DNA of 63,635 nt, counting the filler, from Octopus bimaculoides (Eukaryota): the NCBI RefSeq assembly GCF_001194135.2. It is 8 parts of 8 records of this genome, joined end to end, with 100 filler letters (N's around TTAATTAATTAA, not from the genome) between each part and the next. Parts side by side here need not be neighbours in the genome. Positions count along the whole stretch, not along the records: positions 1 to 14,499 come from NC_068982.1; 7 more parts are not named here. One strand, 5' to 3'. Shown here piece after piece: positions 2,174 through 14,499 of this stretch. A program made the position numbers and the translations under genes. How positions within the stretch are numbered: position 1 is the first letter of the stretch; each line of letters starts with the position of its first letter. Below the pieces are notes generated by a model. That model was not told the origin of the DNA and did not search any database. It saw only the letters and a list, made by a program, of their open reading frames with translations.

Positions 2174-2270
2174 TTAAAATATCTAAATATATGAAATAAC
2201 TCCTCTTTTCAAAAATATTCCTTAATGTCTCTCAACTAATGTCATTTTTTGGTTTTTACTTTCTTCACAG

Positions 2271-3238
2271 ATGTCGACTGGAAGAGTATTTTATGTGCCC
2301 TGAAGGACTGTTTATCAATATATCATTCCATCACCCGAAAGCAAGTGATTGAAAGAATTCGGAATATCTGGACAAAACCTCAAAATCAGAACTTTGTACT
2401 ACCATGTCTGTCTGTACGGAGTGGGCTAGATTTGTATCTTCAAGTTCAAAACTTCCCTCCTGGATCCGAGATAATTGTTTCAGCTGTGAATATCCCTGAT
2501 ATCCCTTACATCATCCATCATCATGGACTTCAGATTGTCTCCCTTGATATTGATGTTGAAACAACTGCACCAAAGATTGATTTCTTTGAACATCTGATCA
2601 GCAAAAAGACTGTTGCTCTTTTAGTTGCTCACATTTATGGAAAGATTTTTGATCTCACACCTTTCATTGAAATAACTAAAAGACACAACCTTGTCGTGAT
2701 AGAGGACTCTGCAGAAGGTTTCTGTGGTTTTAATTACTTAGGACATCCAGAAGCAGATATCACTTTATTTAGTTTTGGAACCATTAAATATTGTACATGC
2801 TTAGGTGGTGCCATTGCCAAAATCCGTGACAAAGCTATTTATGAAAAGATGGACCATATACAAGATAACTATTCCTGCCAAAGTTCAAACAATTATTTAA
2901 AGAAAATAATGAAATGTTGTTTACTTTATCTTCTTCTTGACTGTCCTAATCTGATTAAACCAATTTTATGCATCCTCCAGATTTTATATTTAGATTATCG
3001 ACAGAGTGTCACAAAGCTGGTCCGGGGTTTCCCAGGTGATTTAATGTATCTAATTCGGTTCCAGCCATCATTAGCATTACTGTTGGTCATGTTGCATAGG
3101 TTTGAGACATTCTCTCCTGATGAAATAAACATATGTTGTTTCAAAGGGGAATATGTCAGTCATCAACTGGCAAACATTGTAACTGTTGTTGGTCATAAAT
3201 CTCCTATCAACACCTACTGGCTCTTCCCCATCATAGTG
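2271..3238 (+). CDS. Internal coding exon (968 bp) of a DegT/DnrJ/EryC1/StrS-family PLP-dependent aminotransferase-like protein
   Basis: Acceptor tttcttcacag|AT (phase 1) and donor GTG|gtatgt (phase 0); open throughout. Family motifs occur in order: LSVRSGLDLYL, PGSEIIV, IVSLDID, LLVAHIYG, VVIEDSAE (Asp at 2705-2707), FSFGTIK (Lys at 2786-2788), GGA, YWLFPI. Confidence 0.88.
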
Positions 3239-3659
3239 GTATGTACTTTATCTTTATGATTTTCTACTTGCTTGACCACAGCTTCTGTTAGTTTTCTGTT
3301 TGTCTTCCTTTAAATGTATTTTCATTTGTTTGCATTTGCACTCCCCTGAGAAACACTGAACTACAAGTAGTGACATTGTTGACATTACCCCTGTTGACAA
3401 ATCGTCTGCTGGCTTTGTACCTTCAAACATGTGGCAAAGAGATCCTTTACTTGAAAAATAGTGAAGGGTCAGTCACAGGAAGGTTTCTAGTTGTAAAACA
3501 ATGCCTTTACAGTTTATTTGTCTAATTTATACTTGCATAGAAAAACAAACATAAAAAGGAAAGAAATGAAAATGAATGATGTTGTTATTAATATTTTTAA
3601 CACACTTTCATACATGTATAATTTACTCTTGATACAACACTCAATACTATTACACTTGC

Positions 3660-4020
3660 ATGCCTATGTGGTTAAGATGGTTACTTTACAACCACATGGT
3701 TTCAAGGTCAGTCCTACTGTGTGTCACCTCCTTGAGTAAGTGTCTTCTACTCTAGCCTTAGACCAACCAATGCTTTGAATTTGGCAAAAGGAAACTATGA
3801 GGAAACCCATTATATGTGTGTGTGTGTTTGTCCCCCAAACCACAACTGGTGCTGGTTTATTTACTTCCCTGTAACTTAGCGGTCCAGCAAAAGAGACTGA
3901 GAAAATGAAATTCAGACTTAAAGTAAGTATTTCGGTTGATTTATTCAACTAATTTCTTCAGGACAGTGCCCCAGCATGGCCACCATCCTGAGACTGAAAC
4001 AAATAAAAGATAGAAGATAA
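3660..4020 (+). mobile_element. tRNA-derived SINE, family A, old decayed copy
   Basis: Colinear with the 4649-5042 copy (head, AAGTGTCTTCTACT, internal (GT)n, GTAACTTAGCGGT, GACTGAAACAA tail) with many CpG-type substitutions. Confidence 0.6.
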
Positions 4021-4648
4021 CTGGAAATCATTGATCTTAAAAGATGGTCAGAAAAACCAGTACAAACGGTTCATGCCAGGAGTTTACCACAAATCTACAT
4101 ATAGTTTTACAAAAGAGAGCTTTGTGTTTATTTGGTTGATTCTCTGCCATAATTTAGGTGTTTCATTAAAACCAAGTTAAAAATGAAATTAAGGGACTTG
4201 ATAAACTTACTTTTTTTGGTGACATTTAAGATGCACTTTTTTTTTTTTACCAAAAACATGCCTCAGGAAATCTTGTGGGCAAAGTTGCTTTAAATATTGG
4301 TTTCAAATTTTGGCACAAGGCCAGAAATTCTGGGAGAGAGGATAAGTTGTTTACATCGACCCCAGATGTTCACCTGGTACTTCTTTTATCAACCCTAAAA
4401 GGATGAAAAGCAAAGTTGACCTCAGCAGAATTTGAATACAGGAGAAATACTGCAAAGCTAATGATTCTGCCACCTTAAAAAAGTTGCTTTAAACATTACA
4501 TGCTGTAATGCAGTAAAATCTTTTCCTGAATAAGCACTACTAAAAATTGGCATGCTTATACATCTTTTATTCCATCAACTACATTACTTACTTAAATTAA
4601 CAAATTACACTGGAAAAGAGCTAAAGGAAATATAAAATACTTATGATA

Positions 4649-5042
4649 GGCGCAGGAGTGGCTGTGTGGTAAGTAGCTTGCTTACCAACCACATGGTTCC
4701 GGGTTCATTCCCACTGCGTGGCATCTTGGGCAAGTGTCTTCTACTATAGCCTCGGGCAGACCAAAACCTTGTGAGTGGATTTGGTAGACGGAAACTGAAA
4801 GAAGCCCGTCGTATATATGTATATGTGTGTTTGTGTGTCTGTGTTTGTCCCCCTAGCATTGCTTGACAACTGATGCTGCTGTGTTTACGTCCCCGTAACT
4901 TAGCAGTTTAGCAAAAAGAGACCGATAGAATAAGTACTAGGCTTACAAAGAATAAGTCCTGGGGTCGATTTTCTCGACTAAAGGCGGTGCTCCAGCGTGG
5001 CCGCAGTCAAATTACTGCAACAAGTAAAAGAGAGTAAAAGAG
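4649..5042 (+). mobile_element. tRNA-derived SINE, family A (octopus OK/OR-type), near full length
   Basis: Pol III-like head GGCGCAGGAGTGGCTGTGTGGTAAG...GGGTTCATTCCC, CORE-like CTTGGGCAAGTGTCTT, internal (AT)/(GT) microsatellite, tail AAGTAAAAGAGAGTAAAAGAG. More than 15 related copies in the window. Confidence 0.85.
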
Positions 5043-5849
5043 ATCATTTTTGATATGATATCATAAATACTCAGAGGAAATAGATCTAGAAATTTTGAGG
5101 TCTCCATGCTTTTCTTCTGAAGTTAACAGATGTCTGAGAATGCCTGCTTTAGACAGTGGTCTACAACAGACTTTCTCAATTTTGTGTGTCACTCATCACA
5201 AAGCAGGCTTAAATCAACAAGGTATTCCTTTGTTGCAATGCTACCATTTATTTTTAGCCATCTAAGTTAGTAATCCTGTAAAATGCATGTATATAAAAGC
5301 AGCACCATTTTCACATCACAATGTCATTTCCTTTGCTAATCAGAGTTCTTGTGTGATTACCACATTCCACAGTCTACATACCATTACTGCCAGTAAAATC
5401 TGTTAATGAGTTTGTTAACATTTATCTATTCATTCAGTGTTTTGTTTACTTTTTTTTACTTCCTCATGTGCCAGTTTGACTAAATCACTGCCTTCAAAAT
5501 TACAACAGCTCTGATGTAGTAACATGCCTCACACCACCACTGATATCACATACTCCTTACCATTGACATTACACACTCCCTATCATTGATTCATATACAT
5601 ACATGCCATGTTGCTGACACCATACACACACACACACTCCTTACCACTGACATTACACATTACATACCATTAATGTTGTACACACTCTCTATTCCACTGA
5701 CATCATACACATACTCCTTACCACTGACTTCACATACACACACACTTCATATTATTAACATCAGCACACATATGCTACATAACCCATACCACTAATATCA
5801 CACACTGCCATTTTACACACTCCTTCTCAACATAGGTGTCGTCCAGTCA

Positions 5850-6400
5850 TTCTTTGAACATATGTATAGCCAATGGATCTTTCAGCTTCCATACCTTCCT
5901 TTTTCATGTAGTCTTATGTCTCTGAATCCATCTAGCTCTTACTCCGATGTCGCTAGTAATGTTGAGTGGTATAATCACTAGCCCGTGTTGAGTGATGGAT
6001 TATTTACCAGGGTAACACTTAGTATTCACAACTCATTGTCTATCCCATTTCCTTGTGAGTATGAAGTCTATCTGGCTTGCTTGTTCACCTGAGTGGCATG
6101 TGATTAGCTGACTGGTTTATTTTCTAAAGTAAATATTGCAAATCGTTAGGTCATTTGCATAATAGAACTCGAAGAGTCTTGATCCCTCCTCATTCCATGT
6201 ACCATAACCATTACTTCCATGTACATCAGAATACCCATAATGGTATTGTACAACATGTTCAATAAACTCACCAGCTACAATAATGAAGTTGTTATCTGTT
6301 ATCAAGTTTGTCTTCAAGAGAGCCTCATCAAAACAATTCTTTTGTCTCCCAGTCCTGATTGCATGAGCAGAGATTGCTATTGGCTATGACTAATCAAAGC
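5850..6400 (-). mobile_element. Degenerate RTE-clade LINE APE endonuclease remnant
   Basis: Minus frame reads FIIVAGEFIEHV...GYSDVHGSNGYGTWNEEGSRLFEFYYANDLTICNIYFRK, then ...QIDFIL...TQHGLV, the APE motifs typical of RTE elements. Disrupted. Confidence 0.78.
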
Positions 6401-6748
6401 ATGATTTTTTTTTATCACATACCTAGACTGATATTTTTATCTATTTTTCTACCAATAATACGCCTACTCTACCAGCTTCAGCATTTTACCCAGCCAGGAG
6501 AATTTGTACCTGTTCTTTACTCCTCCACTTTAACTCATGTACATTTTATATTCACAATTAATTCTAGTTACTATTTATTGTTCTGTTTAAGTTAACATTT
6601 GTTTTTCATATCTAACTTTGTCTTAAATTTGAGTCATGAAAGAAGAATTATTGTAGAAATAATACTGTTGTCATTTAAATATACCTTTTCATTTAGCACT
6701 TCCACTTTTTCTTTCATCAACTGTTTTTCTTCATTTTTATATTTTCAG

Positions 6749-7036
6749 AAAAATCCATTTGAGGTGATGAATGGGCTAAACTCTCTTGGAGTTGAGGCAC
6801 ACCGTTCATCTACACAGCTGACTTTTATTGAATCCGACCAGAAACCTGAAGACACTTCTGTTGACTTAGTGCCTTACTACCCTCATGAAGCTAAACATTT
6901 GATGAAAAACATTATCTACTTACCTGTTACAAAAGCTGTACCATTCCATGTTCTTGACCAAATGACCATTGCAGTTAAATATATTGTAACAAAGAATAAA
7001 TATGAATATTCTCATAAAATTCTATCTAAACTATAA
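6749..7036 (+). CDS. Terminal coding exon of the DegT-family aminotransferase-like gene (95 aa + TAA)
   Basis: Acceptor ttttcag|AAA in phase 0. Reads KNPFEVMNGLNSLGVEAHRSSTQLTFIE...PHEAKHLMKNIIYLPV...DQMTIAV, fitting the family C-terminus (LxxxGV...AxxLxxxILxLP). Stop TAA at 7034-7036. Confidence 0.82.
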   Translation, partial: KNPFEVMNGLNSLGVEAHRSSTQLTFIESDQKPEDTSVDLVPYYPHEAKHLMKNIIYLPVTKAVPFHVLDQMTIAVKYIVTKNKYEYSHKILSKL

Positions 7037-9039
7037 AATCAAATGTTTATCATGGAAACAGATGCCATTTTTTTATTATTCAAAAGAACTTCAGCTATTT
7101 TCTGCTCAAAGACAATTTTTTAAACTTAAAAGTTTTATTTATTTTATATAAGTGTCCATTTTAAATATTTTCTGTAATTTGGCACTTTTGAATTTGTATT
7201 AATTATCTAATTTTATTCCAAAATCTACAAGTTATTTTTCTTTCCACATTCTTAAAACCCTTCCAAGGTGAAAAATGTGAATTAAAGGGGAAAAATTTTT
7301 TAAAGCATGAATGCTATTAGAAATAATACAATTACATTATGATTTGGGTGTTTATAATATATACTGGAAGTCAAAACAAAAATTCTTATATAATTAATAT
7401 TCATTCTTTTGCTGATTCAGTCATTTGACTATGACCATACTGGGGCATCTCCTGTAATTATATTGATTATAAAACATCACAACTTCACTGGTATTTATTT
7501 TAATGACTTCCAAAAGATAACGAGACAGGAGTGACTTAGGCAGGATTTGAACTCTGAATGTAAAAGAATGTAACCAAATAACACAGAGTATTCTGTTTGG
7601 TGCTTCACTAATTCTTCTTTCCTCTGCCCATCCCATGTCAACGGAATTTCTTTTTTTTCTTTTCTTGTGAGCAATGAAGGGATACTTTCTTGTAATATTT
7701 AGGAATTTATCATCCCCTCATCAGTAAGTTTCTAAAATAATATATCTGTTATTTGTCAATTATCAATGAAGACAACTTTAAAATAATTTCTTAGAATACA
7801 TTATGTTTAGTTCTCTAACCCATACCAGCATGGAAAACAGACGTTAAATGATGGTGTGTGGTGTGTGACATTACATTTTCATATATAATTGTTTATCACA
7901 ATCTTTATTTCATAGTTCTGACCATGTTTAGAGTAGCATACCAATAACTTCTTTGTTTTTTACTCCCTGAAATAGTATCTGTTGAGTATATATCTCCCTT
8001 ACCTTAAAATCATTCAACCTTGAACAGATATACTGGAGTATTAGACCACCAACTCATGAATCATGAGTTCAAATTAACTGCTGACTTCTCATTGAATTTC
8101 TGAATAGATCACTTTATTCTGTATTGCCTCACTTCATCTTGCTGTTGGAACAGATACCAGGTCATCTGGGAAAGTTACCTAAAATATTCCAACATCCTGT
8201 CCAAGAGTGGATTTATGTTTCATATATTTCACACCATAAAACTAGTATTAAGCATCAGTTCCTATGAAGCTCTTCAGACTTCCAGATATTATTATTGTTA
8301 TTATTATTTATAATAGAAGGAAAGACTACAAAGATGAACAAGGAAGGGGTTCTTATGGAAAACAGTTCTAGGAAGATTCGATTAAGTATTATTGTTTATC
8401 ATGAGGTACAGCAATTAACACATCTTAAGTATTAATGAGACAATGAAAATTCTCACAATATTTTTCAAGACTTGAGGCAAGTGGAAATATATTACTTCTA
8501 AGATAATACTCCCAATTTAATGTCCTAACAAATGTTATAAATAATCTCAATGAGGATGTATACTATTTTGTTACTACTAAAACTGCTTGACAATTATCAC
8601 TATTTTATATTTTTCTAATCATGAAGTTGATGGTTGATAATTTTATTTTTATTGATAAATAAATGCATATATATTAATTTATATATATATATATATATAC
8701 ATTATATATATATATATATGTATATATANNNNNNNNNNNNNNNNNNNNNNNNNNNNNNNNNNNNNNNNNNNNNNNNNNNNNNNNNNNNNNNNNNNNNNNN
8801 NNNNNNNNNNNNNNNNNNNNNNNNNNNNNNNNNNNNNNTATATATACACAATGCAGTGATCTATTGTATCATTGAGCAATATTTGTATAAATTTCAATTT
8901 GTAAAATTTTTTTGCTTCTGGGTGAAATGTGATAAAGTATATATTTTATATTCTGAAACTTGTTTGTGTGTTCTTTGTTTTTTCTATTATAAACATCAAA
9001 AATAATGTATCATCATTATCATCATCAACCTCATCATCA

Positions 9040-9889: not shown

Positions 9890-10832
9890 TATGTTTATGA
9901 CGCATGCGTACGAACAACCATGCTACATGGCAGTGAAACATGGGCTGTAACTGCTGAGGACATACGTAAGCTCGCAAGGAATGAAGCCAGTATGCTCCGT
10001 TGGATGTGTAATGTCAATGTGAATACCCGTCAGAGTGTAAGTATCTTGAGAGAAAAGCTGAACATTAGAAGCATCAGTTGTGGCGTGCAAGAGAGACGAT
10101 TGCGCTGGTATGGACATGTGGTGAGAATGGAGGAGGATAGCTGCGTGAAAAAGTGCCACACCCTAACAGTTGAGGGAACCCGTGGAAGAGGTAGGCCCAG
10201 GAAGACCTGGGCTGAGGTGGTGAGGCAAGACCTTCGTACATTGGGCCTCACCGAGGCGATGACTACGGACCNNNNNNNNNNNNNNNNNNNNNNNNNNNNN
10301 NNNNNNNNNNNNNNNNNNNNNNNNNNNNNNNNNNNNNNNNNNNNNNNNNNNNNNNNNNNNNNNNNNNNNNNNNNNNNNNNNNNNNNNNNNNNNNNNNNNN
10401 NNNNNNNNNNNNNNNNNNNNNNNNNNNNNNNNNNNNNNNNNNNNNNNNNNNNNNNNNNNNNNNNNNNNNNNNNNNNNNNNNNNNNNNNNNNNNNNNNNNN
10501 NNNNNNNNNNNNNNNNNNNNNNNNNNNNNNNNNNNNNNNNNNNNNNNNNNNTTTCGAGCGAGATCGTTGCCAGTGCCCCTGGACTGGCTTGTGCGGGTGG
10601 CACATAAAAGACACCATTTCGAGCGTGGCCGTTTTCGTGCGGGTGACACGTAAAAGCACCCACTACACTCTCTGAGTGGTTGGCGTTAGGAAGGGCATCC
10701 AGCTGTAGAAACTCTGCCAAATCAGACTGGAGCCTGGTGTTGCCATCCGGTTTCACCAGTCCTCAGTCAAATCGTCCAACCCATGCTAGCATGGAAAGCG
10801 GACGTTAAACGATGATGATGATGATGATGATG
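9890..10832 (+). mobile_element. Young 5'-truncated RTE-clade LINE (ORF C-terminus, 3' UTR, (GAT)n tail), interrupted by an assembly gap
   Basis: Reads YDACVRTTMLHGSETWAVTAED...RRLRWYGHVVRM...RGRGRPRKTWAEVV, the RTE ORF C-terminus, open up to the gap at 10272. CpG-rich UTR and microsatellite tail follow. Confidence 0.92.
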
Positions 10833-11805
10833 TAACCAAAGTGTTAGGGTAGGCGTAAAGGCTTATACACTAACTGACCCTGTGCCATCAAAAATGATGG
10901 CTAATTGTAGTATTTTATATATGAAGAAGGTACGTAATAATCACAGATACAAACATTCACATACTTCCCTTGTACATGCAGACACATACACACATGTACT
11001 CAGAGTTGAAATGCTGTTCGATTTTTCTTTTCAGCATTGAACGTTCACCATCCCATTTCCACTGCACACACACCACACACACAAACATTCACATACTTCC
11101 CTTTTGTATACTCACACAGAGTTGAAACACTGATTTTTTTTCACCCCTTCCTTTTTCCATAGCTATTACTTTCTCTCACTCTCTCTTAGTCAGGGCTGTT
11201 ACTCTCACTACTTCTCCTTCACTGAATTACTGTTTTCTCTCCTCTCCCTTCATTTATACTACTTTTTCTCCTACTCCATCCTACTCCTACTCTGTGATCT
11301 TGGACAAATATATATATATATATACAAATATATAAAAACACTACGCTCATTATTATATTAAGAGATGTATTGTTCATTAAATTGTAGATACATTCCCAAA
11401 ACTTTAATGAGGTGTAGTTATGTAGGTGACAAATTCATAACATTATCTAATTGCAGGGAAATATATTTAGTAGGTTGGCTAGTTATATTCTAGTAACACA
11501 AGTATTTGTTTATTTATTTAGTTAGGTTCATCAAAGTATACAGCACAATAATTAATAACAATAACAAATTAGCTTGAAAATTTGAGTACATATTTAAATC
11601 ATGCTTTGAATCTAGTGTTCTGGAACTTCCATCTATAATAGACACAGGCAGCATGGTTGTGCGGTTAAGAAGCTTTCTTAACTGTGTGATCTTGGATTCA
11701 GTCTCACTACGCAGCACCTTGGACAAGTGTCTTCTACTATAGCCCTGGGTTGACCAAAGCCTTGTCAGAAGATTTGGTAGATGAAAATGAAGGAAGCCCT
11801 TCATA

Positions 11806-13462: not shown

Positions 13463-14149
13463 TAAATAAGAATAAGAAGTTATAAACTTTGAGAGAGCAT
13501 GGAATAATTATTTTAGGGAGGGCAGTAAAACTCAAAGCAGATAAAGTTACATATAATAAGCATGTAAATATTGGGTTGAAAAGCTCTTTTTATCATTGTT
13601 TGGCACCAATAAACTAAAGATGCCATGAAGCACTTAACTTCATGACTAAGAATATCTGACAAAGTCATTGAGATAACAGCCAGAGGTAATCATTAATTAT
13701 TTATGTATTTATATGTTTAGTTATCTTTTATCTGTCATTTGCTTCAGTCATTGCACTGTGGTCATGCTGGGGCACTGCATTAAAGGGGTTAAGTTGAATA
13801 GATTAACCCCTGTATGTATGTATTTCTTAAACTCCGGTACTTAATCTATCAGTCTCTTTTGTTGAACCACTAAGTTATGTTTGCGTAAACAAACTAAAAC
13901 CACTTGTCACATGGTAGGAGTGGGGAACGAACAGAGACACAAAGACACACACAGCACAAGAACCCCTCCCCCAGTACACACTGTAAAGTGGTTGGCATTA
14001 GGAAGGGTGTCTAGCCATAGAAGCCATGCCAAAACAGACAATGGAGTATGATACAGTCCTTTGACCCATCAGAACCTGTCAGACTATCCCCTCTATACCA
14101 GCATAGAACATAAATGTTAAATGATGATGATGATGATATATATATGTAT

Positions 14150-14499
14150 GTATCATCATCATCATCATCATCATCGTTTAACGTCCGCTTTCCATGCTAG
14201 CATGGGTTGGACGATTTGACTGACGACTGGTGAAACCGGATGGCAACACCAGGCTCCAATCTAAATTTGGCAGAGTTTCTACAGCTGGATGCCCTTCCTA
14301 ACGCCAACCACTCAGAGAGTGTAGTAGGTGCTTTTACGTGTCACCCGCACGAAGGCCAGTCAGGCGATACTGGCAACGACCACGCTCGAAATGGTGTCTT
14401 TTATGTGCCACCCGCACAAGAGCCAGTCCAGGGGCACTGGCAACGATCTCGCTCGAAAATCCTACGAAGGCCAGTCAGGCGATACTGGCAACGGCTACG
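14150..14499 (-). mobile_element. Young RTE-LINE 3' UTR and tail, cut by the scaffold spacer
   Basis: Near-identical reverse complement of 10552-10832, with extra internal repeat units. Confidence 0.88.

Follow-up and report, generated by a model that had tools for sequence, protein, structure and literature searches.

An ancient animal gene for a DegT-family PLP enzyme with a putative peroxisomal targeting signal in Octopus bimaculoides

What does an enzyme of an overwhelmingly bacterial family do in an octopus? The stretch of DNA analysed here (63,635 nucleotides, comprising eight parts of eight records of the Octopus bimaculoides assembly GCF_001194135.2; hereafter the window) carries at positions 2271–7036 most of a spliced gene for a DegT/DnrJ/EryC1/StrS-family protein, from a group of enzymes that depend on pyridoxal 5'-phosphate (PLP). 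An earlier note on this DNA, made from the sequence alone, had presented the gene as a nucleotide-sugar aminotransferase domesticated in cephalopods and pointing to an amino-sugar or related pathway. Our analysis corrects this framing, suggesting that the gene is pan-metazoan rather than a cephalopod curiosity, that its product is probably peroxisomal, and that it probably does not serve an amino-sugar glycan pathway.

Gene structure, fold and catalytic residues

In an open reading frame (ORF) scan of the window, the plus-strand frame was open at 2249–3259 and 6599–7036, and joining 2271–3238 to 6749–7036 gave 417 whole codons after one split codon. The spliced product was 100% identical to residues 17–433 of the uncharacterized protein LOC106869918 of O. 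bimaculoides (P0001, 433 amino acids). The intact product of at least 418 amino acids read previously from two phase-compatible exons thus matched this protein exactly, the missing part being exon 1 outside the window. Coding exon 1 (46 nt, MSNLCNTLPYSCIYL plus one base) was not found inside the window by exact and fuzzy peptide searches; it lies 19.3 kb upstream of 2271, at positions 10001–10046 of the chromosome locus L001 on a 192-Mb chromosome scaffold, where the window starts at L001:27082, 17 kb downstream of exon 1. Exact protein threading on L001 gave three coding exons, one phase-1 intron and one phase-0 intron. The parts of the gene that lie in the window are the following.

2249–2270, plus strand: 3' end of intron 1, a polypyrimidine tract and then the AG acceptor (...tttttggtttttactttcttcacag, followed by AT of the exon)
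2271–3238, plus strand: coding exon 2 (968 nt), from bases 2–3 of the Asp16 codon to Val338, matching P0001 at 100%
3239–6748, plus strand: intron 2 (3510 nt, GT...AG, phase 0), holding interspersed repeats
6749–7036, plus strand: coding exon 3, for residues 339–433 (small C-terminal domain and tail), then the stop codon

Intron 1 is 19.3 kb long and of phase 1, with its 5' end beyond the window. The donor (GTG/GTATGT at 3238/3239) and acceptor (TTTTCAG/AAA at 6748/6749) of intron 2, both in phase 0, reproduced exactly the length and the splice sites reported earlier. Exon 2 encodes the PLP-binding large domain together with a subfamily-specific helical insert, and the stop codon is TAA at 7034–7036. 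The G+C content of the gene region is 30–39% throughout (33% for the gene), similar to that of the flanks. An open frame of 322 codons at 33% G+C, along with the strong profile match described below, excludes a chance ORF. A scan for bacterial promoters and terminators 3' of the stop codon, irrelevant for an animal gene, returned matches at chance level.

PF01041 (DegT_DnrJ_EryC1) was the best family in a Pfam profile scan (E = 6e-22; 78.8 bits against a gathering cut-off of 19.8), while Aminotran_5 (PF00266), another fold-type I family, scored merely E = 0.035. The PF01041 match was restricted to profile positions 45–211 of 360, that is, to the N-terminal half, and to query residues 45–208 of 417. 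Sequence and profile searches of the PDB returned DegT-family chains only, the best being 7N63, perosamine synthase and inosose aminotransferases; the best sequence match, in the group of perosamine synthase, ArnB, WecE and PseC, had E = 4e-14, and the profile also aligned weakly with the C-terminal domain of 7N63 and 3BN1. An AlphaFold2 (AF2) model built from an alignment of 66 homologues had a predicted local distance difference test score (pLDDT) of 92.7 and a predicted template modelling score of 0.92, and its top 50 Foldseek matches in the PDB were all DegT enzymes (target-normalised TM-score 0.62–0.76). The model indicates that the octopus protein has the two-domain fold-type-I architecture of the DegT family, C-terminal domain included.

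Two catalytic residues can be placed by alignment with guanosine diphosphate (GDP)-perosamine synthase.

2705–2707, plus strand: codon of Asp161 (IEDSAE), aligned with IEDAAE of GDP-perosamine synthase
2786–2788, plus strand: codon of Lys188 (FSFGTIK), the Schiff-base lysine, aligned with K186 of GDP-perosamine synthase (FSFFGNK)

In this fold, the Asp pairs with the pyridine nitrogen of PLP. D161 and K188 were invariant across the 66 aligned animal and bacterial sequences, in agreement with the earlier reading of these motifs, and the octopus protein retained all residues invariant in that alignment. A K186A entry of perosamine synthase is named among the Foldseek matches. Judged by these sequence features, the octopus gene is firmly predicted to encode a DegT-family PLP enzyme with the catalytic Lys and Asp kept.

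The subfamily to which this protein belongs is set apart by an insert of ~50 residues (about 221–266) that forms a hydrophobic helix-Pro-helix hairpin with basic ends.

2900–2983, plus strand: helix-Pro-helix hairpin KKIMKCCLLYLLLDCPNLIKPILCILQI, residues 226–253, in a region without a Pfam DegT profile match

The AF2 model places the hairpin helices at residues 221–239 and 241–253. The Kyte-Doolittle hydrophobicity has a 19-residue maximum of 1.76 at residues 233–251 and is alike in animal and bacterial members. Furthermore, invariant Arg65 and Asp69 replace the G-T-T/S-A-L-H turn of classic DegT members, and an RGFP motif is invariant in the subfamily. The GDP-perosamine synthase of Caulobacter (Per; PDB 3BN1, 3DR4, 3DR7), ArnB, WecE and PseC thus share the Pfam family, the fold and the aligned catalytic Lys and Asp with the octopus protein, but at only 14–19% identity over the structural alignment; the octopus subfamily adds the ~50 residues of the hydrophobic helical hairpin, has R65 where these enzymes have their G-T-T/S phosphate-binding turn, carries a type-1 peroxisomal targeting signal (PTS1) motif in eukaryotes, and has prokaryotic orthologues located outside sugar clusters. 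Scyllo-inosose and 2-deoxy-scyllo-inosose L-glutamine aminotransferases (PDB 2C81, 5W71, 7B0D) and NtdA/KabA, which act on 3-oxo-glucose-6-phosphate, belong to the same family and score about equally to the nucleotide-sugar enzymes; they show no specific closeness to the octopus protein and are located in antibiotic gene clusters. Their substrates indicate that the DegT fold accepts cyclitol and sugar-phosphate ketones.

The sea-urchin orthologues (P0268, P0270, P0272, P0276, P0286) are 680–813 amino acids long, the loop between 'RGATQL..E.D' and 'YP.EARYL' being enlarged to ~250–370 disordered, Ser/Pro/Gln-rich residues. Pecten has a smaller expansion at the same site.

Conservation in animals and the C-terminal tripeptide

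A recent horizontal acquisition by cephalopods, or contamination of the assembly with bacterial DNA, would fit the bacterial character of the family. A 2024 tree-of-life survey of aminotransferases describes PF01041 as 'sugar ATs ... enriched in eubacteria and archaea' (PMC11214133), and the closest non-eukaryotic relatives of the octopus protein are from Planctomycetota (32–35% identity). However, homologues at 40–80% identity were found in other cephalopods (Argonauta, Sepia), bivalves, gastropods, a brachiopod, nemerteans and annelids; among deuterostomes in starfish, brittle stars, crinoids, sea urchins, hemichordates, three amphioxus species and tunicates; and further in a centipede, bdelloid rotifers, an octocoral, a jellyfish, the sponge Oscarella and the rhizarian amoeba Leptophrys. 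The orthologues thus come from more than 10 animal phyla, the groups represented being Porifera, Cnidaria, Rotifera, Myriapoda, Mollusca, Annelida, Nemertea, Brachiopoda, Echinodermata, Hemichordata, Cephalochordata and Tunicata; the homologues listed bore no name of a vertebrate, an insect or a nematode. In a neighbour-joining tree that follows the species tree, the animal sequences grouped roughly by phylum and the bacterial ones separately. Both octopus introns recur, with codon position and phase unchanged, in Argonauta, the scallop Pecten, the starfish Acanthaster and Ciona. Moreover, the octopus gene has spliceosomal introns of 19.3 and 3.5 kb with host repeats, sits on a 192-Mb chromosome scaffold and does not differ notably from its flanks in G+C content. 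On the shared introns, transfer and contamination were rejected for practical purposes, and we regard them as hardly conceivable.

These results bear out the earlier view of a real spliced animal gene with homologues in other invertebrates and protists, and overturn its treatment as a cephalopod feature. For a gene whose range spans sponges, cnidarians and amphioxus, the word 'domesticated' leaves room only for vertical descent or an acquisition of great age. Acanthaster (L087) and Ciona (L088) have in common a third, phase-2 intron after 'ALLK..(L/T)(K/F)', which is not in molluscs, and the Ciona gene has 10 introns, compared with 2 in octopus. Read-through of the GT donor of intron 2 is seen in dozens of fragments from metagenomes and Logan, whose ends read 'WLFPI[IV]V-VS...'.

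That the locus is a decaying pseudogene or an untranslated relic is very improbable. The reading frame is open over its full length, the splice sites both match the consensus, the residues invariant among animal and bacterial members are all kept, and the ratio of nonsynonymous to synonymous substitution rates (dN/dS) between Octopus and Argonauta is 0.12, far from 1, at a dS of about 1.0, which is near saturation. Furthermore, a 2.1-kb Logan contig encodes a bivalve-type orthologue; since the orthologue reads uninterrupted, this contig represents a spliced full-length transcript of a relative. The pseudogene reading was rejected on the open frame, the splice sites, dN/dS and the invariant residues, and together the shared introns, the tree, dN/dS and the transcript of a relative set aside contamination, recent transfer and a pseudogene alike. 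The gene is ancient in animals, is under strong purifying selection and occurs in most non-vertebrate animal phyla, so that a distinct DegT subfamily has been kept there since before the bilaterian divergence.

The octopus protein ends in ...HKILSKL, and this conserved C-terminal -SKL, overlooked in the earlier note, fits the PTS1 pattern [SAC][KRH][LM].

7025–7033, plus strand: C-terminal Ser-Lys-Leu (TCT AAA CTA), a putative PTS1, with TAA directly after it

The C-terminal ends were tallied in 96 eukaryote-type sequences with a complete C-terminal domain and in 45 bacterial-type sequences. Among the former, 72 ended in [SA]KL, six in close variants (AKI, ARL, SKI and SKM once each, SRL twice) and four in weak variants, leaving 14 without a signal; a PTS1-like end was found in none of the 45 bacterial-type sequences. 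At least four of these 14 are bacterial; others include the four tunicates, three gene models that are truncated or fused, the model from the jellyfish Sanderia and a sea-urchin paralogue. The residues preceding the tripeptide are unconserved, and the last ~13 residues of the octopus protein are disordered in the AF2 model (pLDDT 52–57, no secondary structure). A conserved end after such a variable, disordered tail argues for a PTS1 rather than a structural motif. In sea urchins, -SKL is kept despite the growth of the disordered loop to ~370 residues. This conservation pattern is strong evidence for the predicted import of the enzyme into peroxisomes.

One protein of Saccostrea cucullata (P0263, 840 amino acids) has the DegT-like part fused to an innexin, the DegT part ending in ...VRPQSKL at the seam; this fusion is probably an annotation read-through of two adjacent genes. 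PTS1-like ends were also seen in non-animal, eukaryote-looking homologues with low-complexity inserts, namely P0083 (683 amino acids, -ARL), P0327 (-SRL), P0333 (-SAL) and P0335 (-SSL), and the homologue of Leptophrys vorax (P0287) ends in -SRL. The peroxisomal address may predate animals.

Alanine-glyoxylate aminotransferase (AGXT) is the textbook animal peroxisomal fold-type-I PLP aminotransferase and has a C-terminal PTS1-type signal. It differs from the octopus enzyme in its class (Aminotran_5, PF00266), in its substrate and in being present in vertebrates. A DegT-family 'novel aminotransferase' predicted to be mitochondrial occurs in Andalucia godoyi, apusomonads and an amoebozoan (PMC7050145). 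It is likewise a bacterial-type DegT gene in eukaryotes with an organelle address, though its signal is a mitochondrial one at the N-terminus and its range in protists is very patchy, animals not being reported. The literature searched yielded no study of a DegT enzyme of animals or of peroxisomes, nor any characterised animal function, as the earlier note had supposed. These proteins are already in public databases under the labels 'uncharacterized' or 'DegT family', and the presence of the gene is thus on record; as far as we can tell, no description exists so far of the subfamily, of its PTS1, of how old it is in animals or of the oxidase partner discussed below. If the signal works, invertebrate peroxisomes would hold a PLP-dependent amination step without a counterpart in the vertebrate, fly and worm models, on which knowledge of peroxisome biochemistry rests; this opens a directly testable question on invertebrate peroxisome metabolism.

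Oxidase partner and proposed reaction

Full-length bacterial relatives, at the 32–35% identity given above, share the insert and the N-terminal motif with the animal proteins. Most of the 223 GTDB species in which they were found are Planctomycetota, the others including Acidobacteriota, Chloroflexota and Cyanobacteria. Neighbouring genes were clustered at 80 GTDB loci, and no neighbour family was present at more than 7 of them. At five Planctomycetales loci, an FAD_binding_4/ALO-like oxidase lies immediately upstream, is co-directional and overlaps the start of the DegT-like gene; nothing besides this pairing is conserved there, and neither the 80 loci nor four neighbourhoods inspected one by one revealed another conserved operon. 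Moreover, gene fusions with the DegT-like part N-terminal and the oxidase C-terminal form at least five clusters: P0342 (139 member sequences from Candidatus Limnocylindria and Candidatus Acidoferrum; Chloroflexota and Acidobacteriota), P0380 (61 members, Acidobacteriota), P0466, P0469 and P0484. Over their entire length, the oxidase domain of the fusions and the oxidase of the operons are homologous (32% identity, E = 9e-68). A membrane anchor is present at the N-terminus of the operon oxidase, and the fusion gene stands alone, its neighbours all being housekeeping genes. The nearest solved oxidases are L-galactono-1,4-lactone dehydrogenase, DprE1 and xylitol oxidase, all of which convert a sugar or polyol C-OH to a carbonyl. 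The recurring partner of the bacterial orthologues is a DprE1/aldonolactone-oxidase-like flavin adenine dinucleotide (FAD)-dependent oxidase of the vanillyl-alcohol oxidase (VAO) type.

Two-step modules that turn C-OH into C-NH2 include GnnA/GnnB, which make UDP-GlcNAc3N, and the pairs of FAD-dehydrogenase and aminotransferase in aminoglycoside pathways. The fusions and operons of the oxidase and the DegT-like protein are alike in logic; here, the oxidase is of the VAO/p-cresol methylhydroxylase (PCMH) type, and the module lies outside a biosynthetic cluster.

Considering these results, we suggest that the animal protein is probably a PLP aminotransferase located in peroxisomes, where it would aminate a carbonyl that an oxidase has produced, a reading that we favour without regarding it as secure. 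The -SKL end would work as a PTS1, and the folded enzyme would be imported into the peroxisomal matrix. There, it would pass the amino group of Glu or Gln via pyridoxamine 5'-phosphate (PMP) to a carbonyl substrate, and that carbonyl would be made by a flavin oxidase from an alcohol such as a polyol, a sugar or a head-group-like compound. The putative scheme thus runs from alcohol through flavin oxidase to carbonyl, and from carbonyl through the DegT-like enzyme in its PMP form to amine. The oxidase step is suggested by the repeated fusion or translational coupling of the bacterial orthologues with the oxidase, and the animal enzyme may keep this bacterial scheme with a peroxisomal oxidase as its partner. 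Since peroxisomes house flavin oxidases that form H2O2, an H2O2-forming partner would explain the peroxisomal address. The bacterial oxidase-aminotransferase fusions offer a practical route to the chemistry.

Several observations weigh against this proposal. The link to the oxidase is seen in just 5 of the 80 bacterial loci and in the fusions, and in bacteria rather than animals. The best 120 word-index matches of the oxidase were of the Planctomycetota type only, with no animal orthologue among them, and the best 150 profile matches from 1.84 billion representatives were all bacterial-looking. No oxidase gene was among the neighbours of the Adineta vaga orthologue. The earlier postulate of an upstream producer of a keto substrate thus gains a candidate class, the VAO-type FAD oxidase of bacterial fusions and operons, while an animal partner was not found in these searches. 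Two of the 150 oxidase matches had PTS1-like ends, both bacterial: P0474 (Rhizobium, with a twin-arginine translocation (TAT)-like leader), the only one ending in -SKL, and P0501, which has a signal peptide. As for the signal on the aminotransferase itself, the tunicate orthologues (P0047, P0051, P0052, P0266) and one jellyfish model, from Sanderia, have no PTS1, and downstream of the gene in Ciona no other last exon with an -SKL end came to light; the absence in tunicates may reflect a relocation of the enzyme. Around 15% of the bacterial loci adjoin a glycosyltransferase family 4 (GT4) gene, a Wzx-like flippase or a PIG-L deacetylase, so that the substrate may yet be a sugar. Finally, a DegT member with quite different chemistry is on record in CuyC, considered below.

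The GT4, Wzx-like and PIG-L neighbours also speak for the label that the gene had been given earlier, that is, a cytosolic aminotransferase acting on a UDP-, GDP-, dTDP- or CDP-4-keto sugar and making an amino or deoxy sugar for a glycan, like ArnB, WecE, PseC and Per. Perosamine synthase, ArnB, WecE and PseC are, moreover, the best matches in sequence and fold. However, the NCBIfam equivalog scores were all far under their cut-offs (ArnB 53 against 631 bits, RfbH 44 against 423, PseC 44 against 424, the WecE type 43 against 375 and DesI 26 against 650), and the Pfam match covers the N-terminal half only. No nucleoside diphosphate (NDP)-sugar dehydratase or nucleotidyltransferase recurred beside the 80 bacterial orthologues, the fusion gene is solitary among housekeeping genes, and the conserved PTS1 would put the animal enzyme away from cytosolic nucleotide-sugar pools. 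The absence of a sugar-cluster context, the sub-threshold equivalog scores, the diverged protein half and the predicted peroxisomal address thus make a cytosolic nucleotide sugar the less likely substrate, and we doubt this reading, to which we give a small weight; the label is not supported.

Family membership alone leaves the substrate unfixed, since solved DegT enzymes use inososes and sugar phosphates and CuyC is a racemase. A DegT-fold PLP enzyme could also catalyse racemisation, epimerisation or elimination on a marine amino alcohol or osmolyte. CuyC, a PF01041 member, provides the model, being a racemase of D-cysteinolate, a C3 amino-alcohol sulfonate and marine osmolyte (PMC12814064). 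Compared by description only, CuyC is a DegT member with a small C3 amino alcohol as substrate, and it is a racemase found in sulfonate-degradation clusters. That the octopus gene occurs mostly in marine invertebrates accords with such chemistry. However, the fusion or operon with an alcohol-oxidising flavoenzyme fits a conversion of carbonyl to amine better, and a dehydratase of the ColD/E1 type is unlikely because the catalytic Lys is kept where such dehydratases have His (PDB entry titles). We consider non-transaminase chemistry unlikely.

Other domain fusions were observed on both sides of the oxidase pairing. In the oxidase family, with the best 150 representatives considered, the DegT-like domain is fused in 4, an N-terminal glycerophosphodiester phosphodiesterase (GDPD) domain (PF03009) is present in 13, and a C-terminal phosphoesterase/phospholipase-C-type domain (PF04185) is present in one (P0464). 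The proteins with the PF03009 domain are the following.

PF03009-oxidase fusions: P0393, P0404, P0408, P0414, P0425, P0435, P0440, P0443, P0447, P0453, P0471, P0494, P0498

In two metagenomic proteins of the Joint Genome Institute (JGI) (P0341 and P0363, 592–602 amino acids), a PlsC-type acyltransferase (PF01553) is fused N-terminally to a DegT-like protein of the subfamily. On one bacterial contig (L005:9367–17278), the DegT-like gene adjoins a class-III aminotransferase, and a squalene-hopene cyclase gene and an HpnH-like radical SAM gene lie within 6 kb, an arrangement unrepeated at other loci.

A more specific form of the proposed oxidase-aminotransferase pairing may be imagined. The synthesis of ether lipids from dihydroxyacetone phosphate (DHAP) starts in peroxisomes. 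The animal enzyme might be what survives of an undescribed pathway, namely the aminotransferase half of an oxidase-aminotransferase pair acting on lipid head groups or on substrates of the glycerol-phosphate type. In peroxisomes, a ketone such as DHAP or acyl-/alkyl-DHAP would be converted into a serinol-phosphate-like amino polyol or amino lipid; animals would have inherited such a pathway from their ancestor, and vertebrates, insects and nematodes would have lost it. The GDPD, phospholipase-C-type and PlsC/GNPAT-type fusions, the membrane anchor of the oxidase, the hydrophobic hairpin and CuyC are hints in this direction. Lying two inferential steps from the octopus gene, the idea is a tentative one, with a low probability in our judgement.

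Repeats in intron 2 and the flanks

Intron 2 had been described as full of debris from short and long interspersed nuclear elements (SINEs and LINEs). Interspersed repeats are indeed present, since a comparison within the window showed that 4381–4441 resembles 1792–1852 and that 4701–4794 resembles 11694–11787. The assignment to SINE and LINE classes was not confirmed by tRNA, Rfam and Pfam scans: the intron repeats had no tRNA-like heads and matched no Rfam family, and two LINE-like ORF fragments contained no Pfam domain, leaving the LINE class unverified. The first fragment (9920–10271, plus strand; ...LRWYGHVVRMEEDS...GRGRPRKTWAEVVRQDL...), which we take to resemble the C-terminal region of LINE ORF2 though Pfam does not confirm it, runs into the N gap at 10272–10551. 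The second (6117–6317, minus strand), whose class is likewise unverified, lies inside intron 2.

Long (TA)n/(AT)n microsatellites were found at 1–70, 304–390, 475–540, 1360–1390, 8640–8728 and 11309–11330, one of which abuts the assembly gap at 8729–8838. A further interspersed repeat recurs in five copies, four direct and one inverted.

190–249, 7805–7864, 10766–10825 and 14078–14137, plus strand, and 14161–14220, minus strand: interspersed repeat with a (GAT)n tail and the end ...CCAGCATGGAAA..GACGTTAAA(T/C)GATGATGATGAT

The segments 10634–10832 and 14154–14353 are inverted copies of ~200 nt, 96–99% complementary and 3.3 kb apart, and have the look of young copies of a single mobile element. 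Another copy, with greater divergence (80–81%), is located at 59–181.

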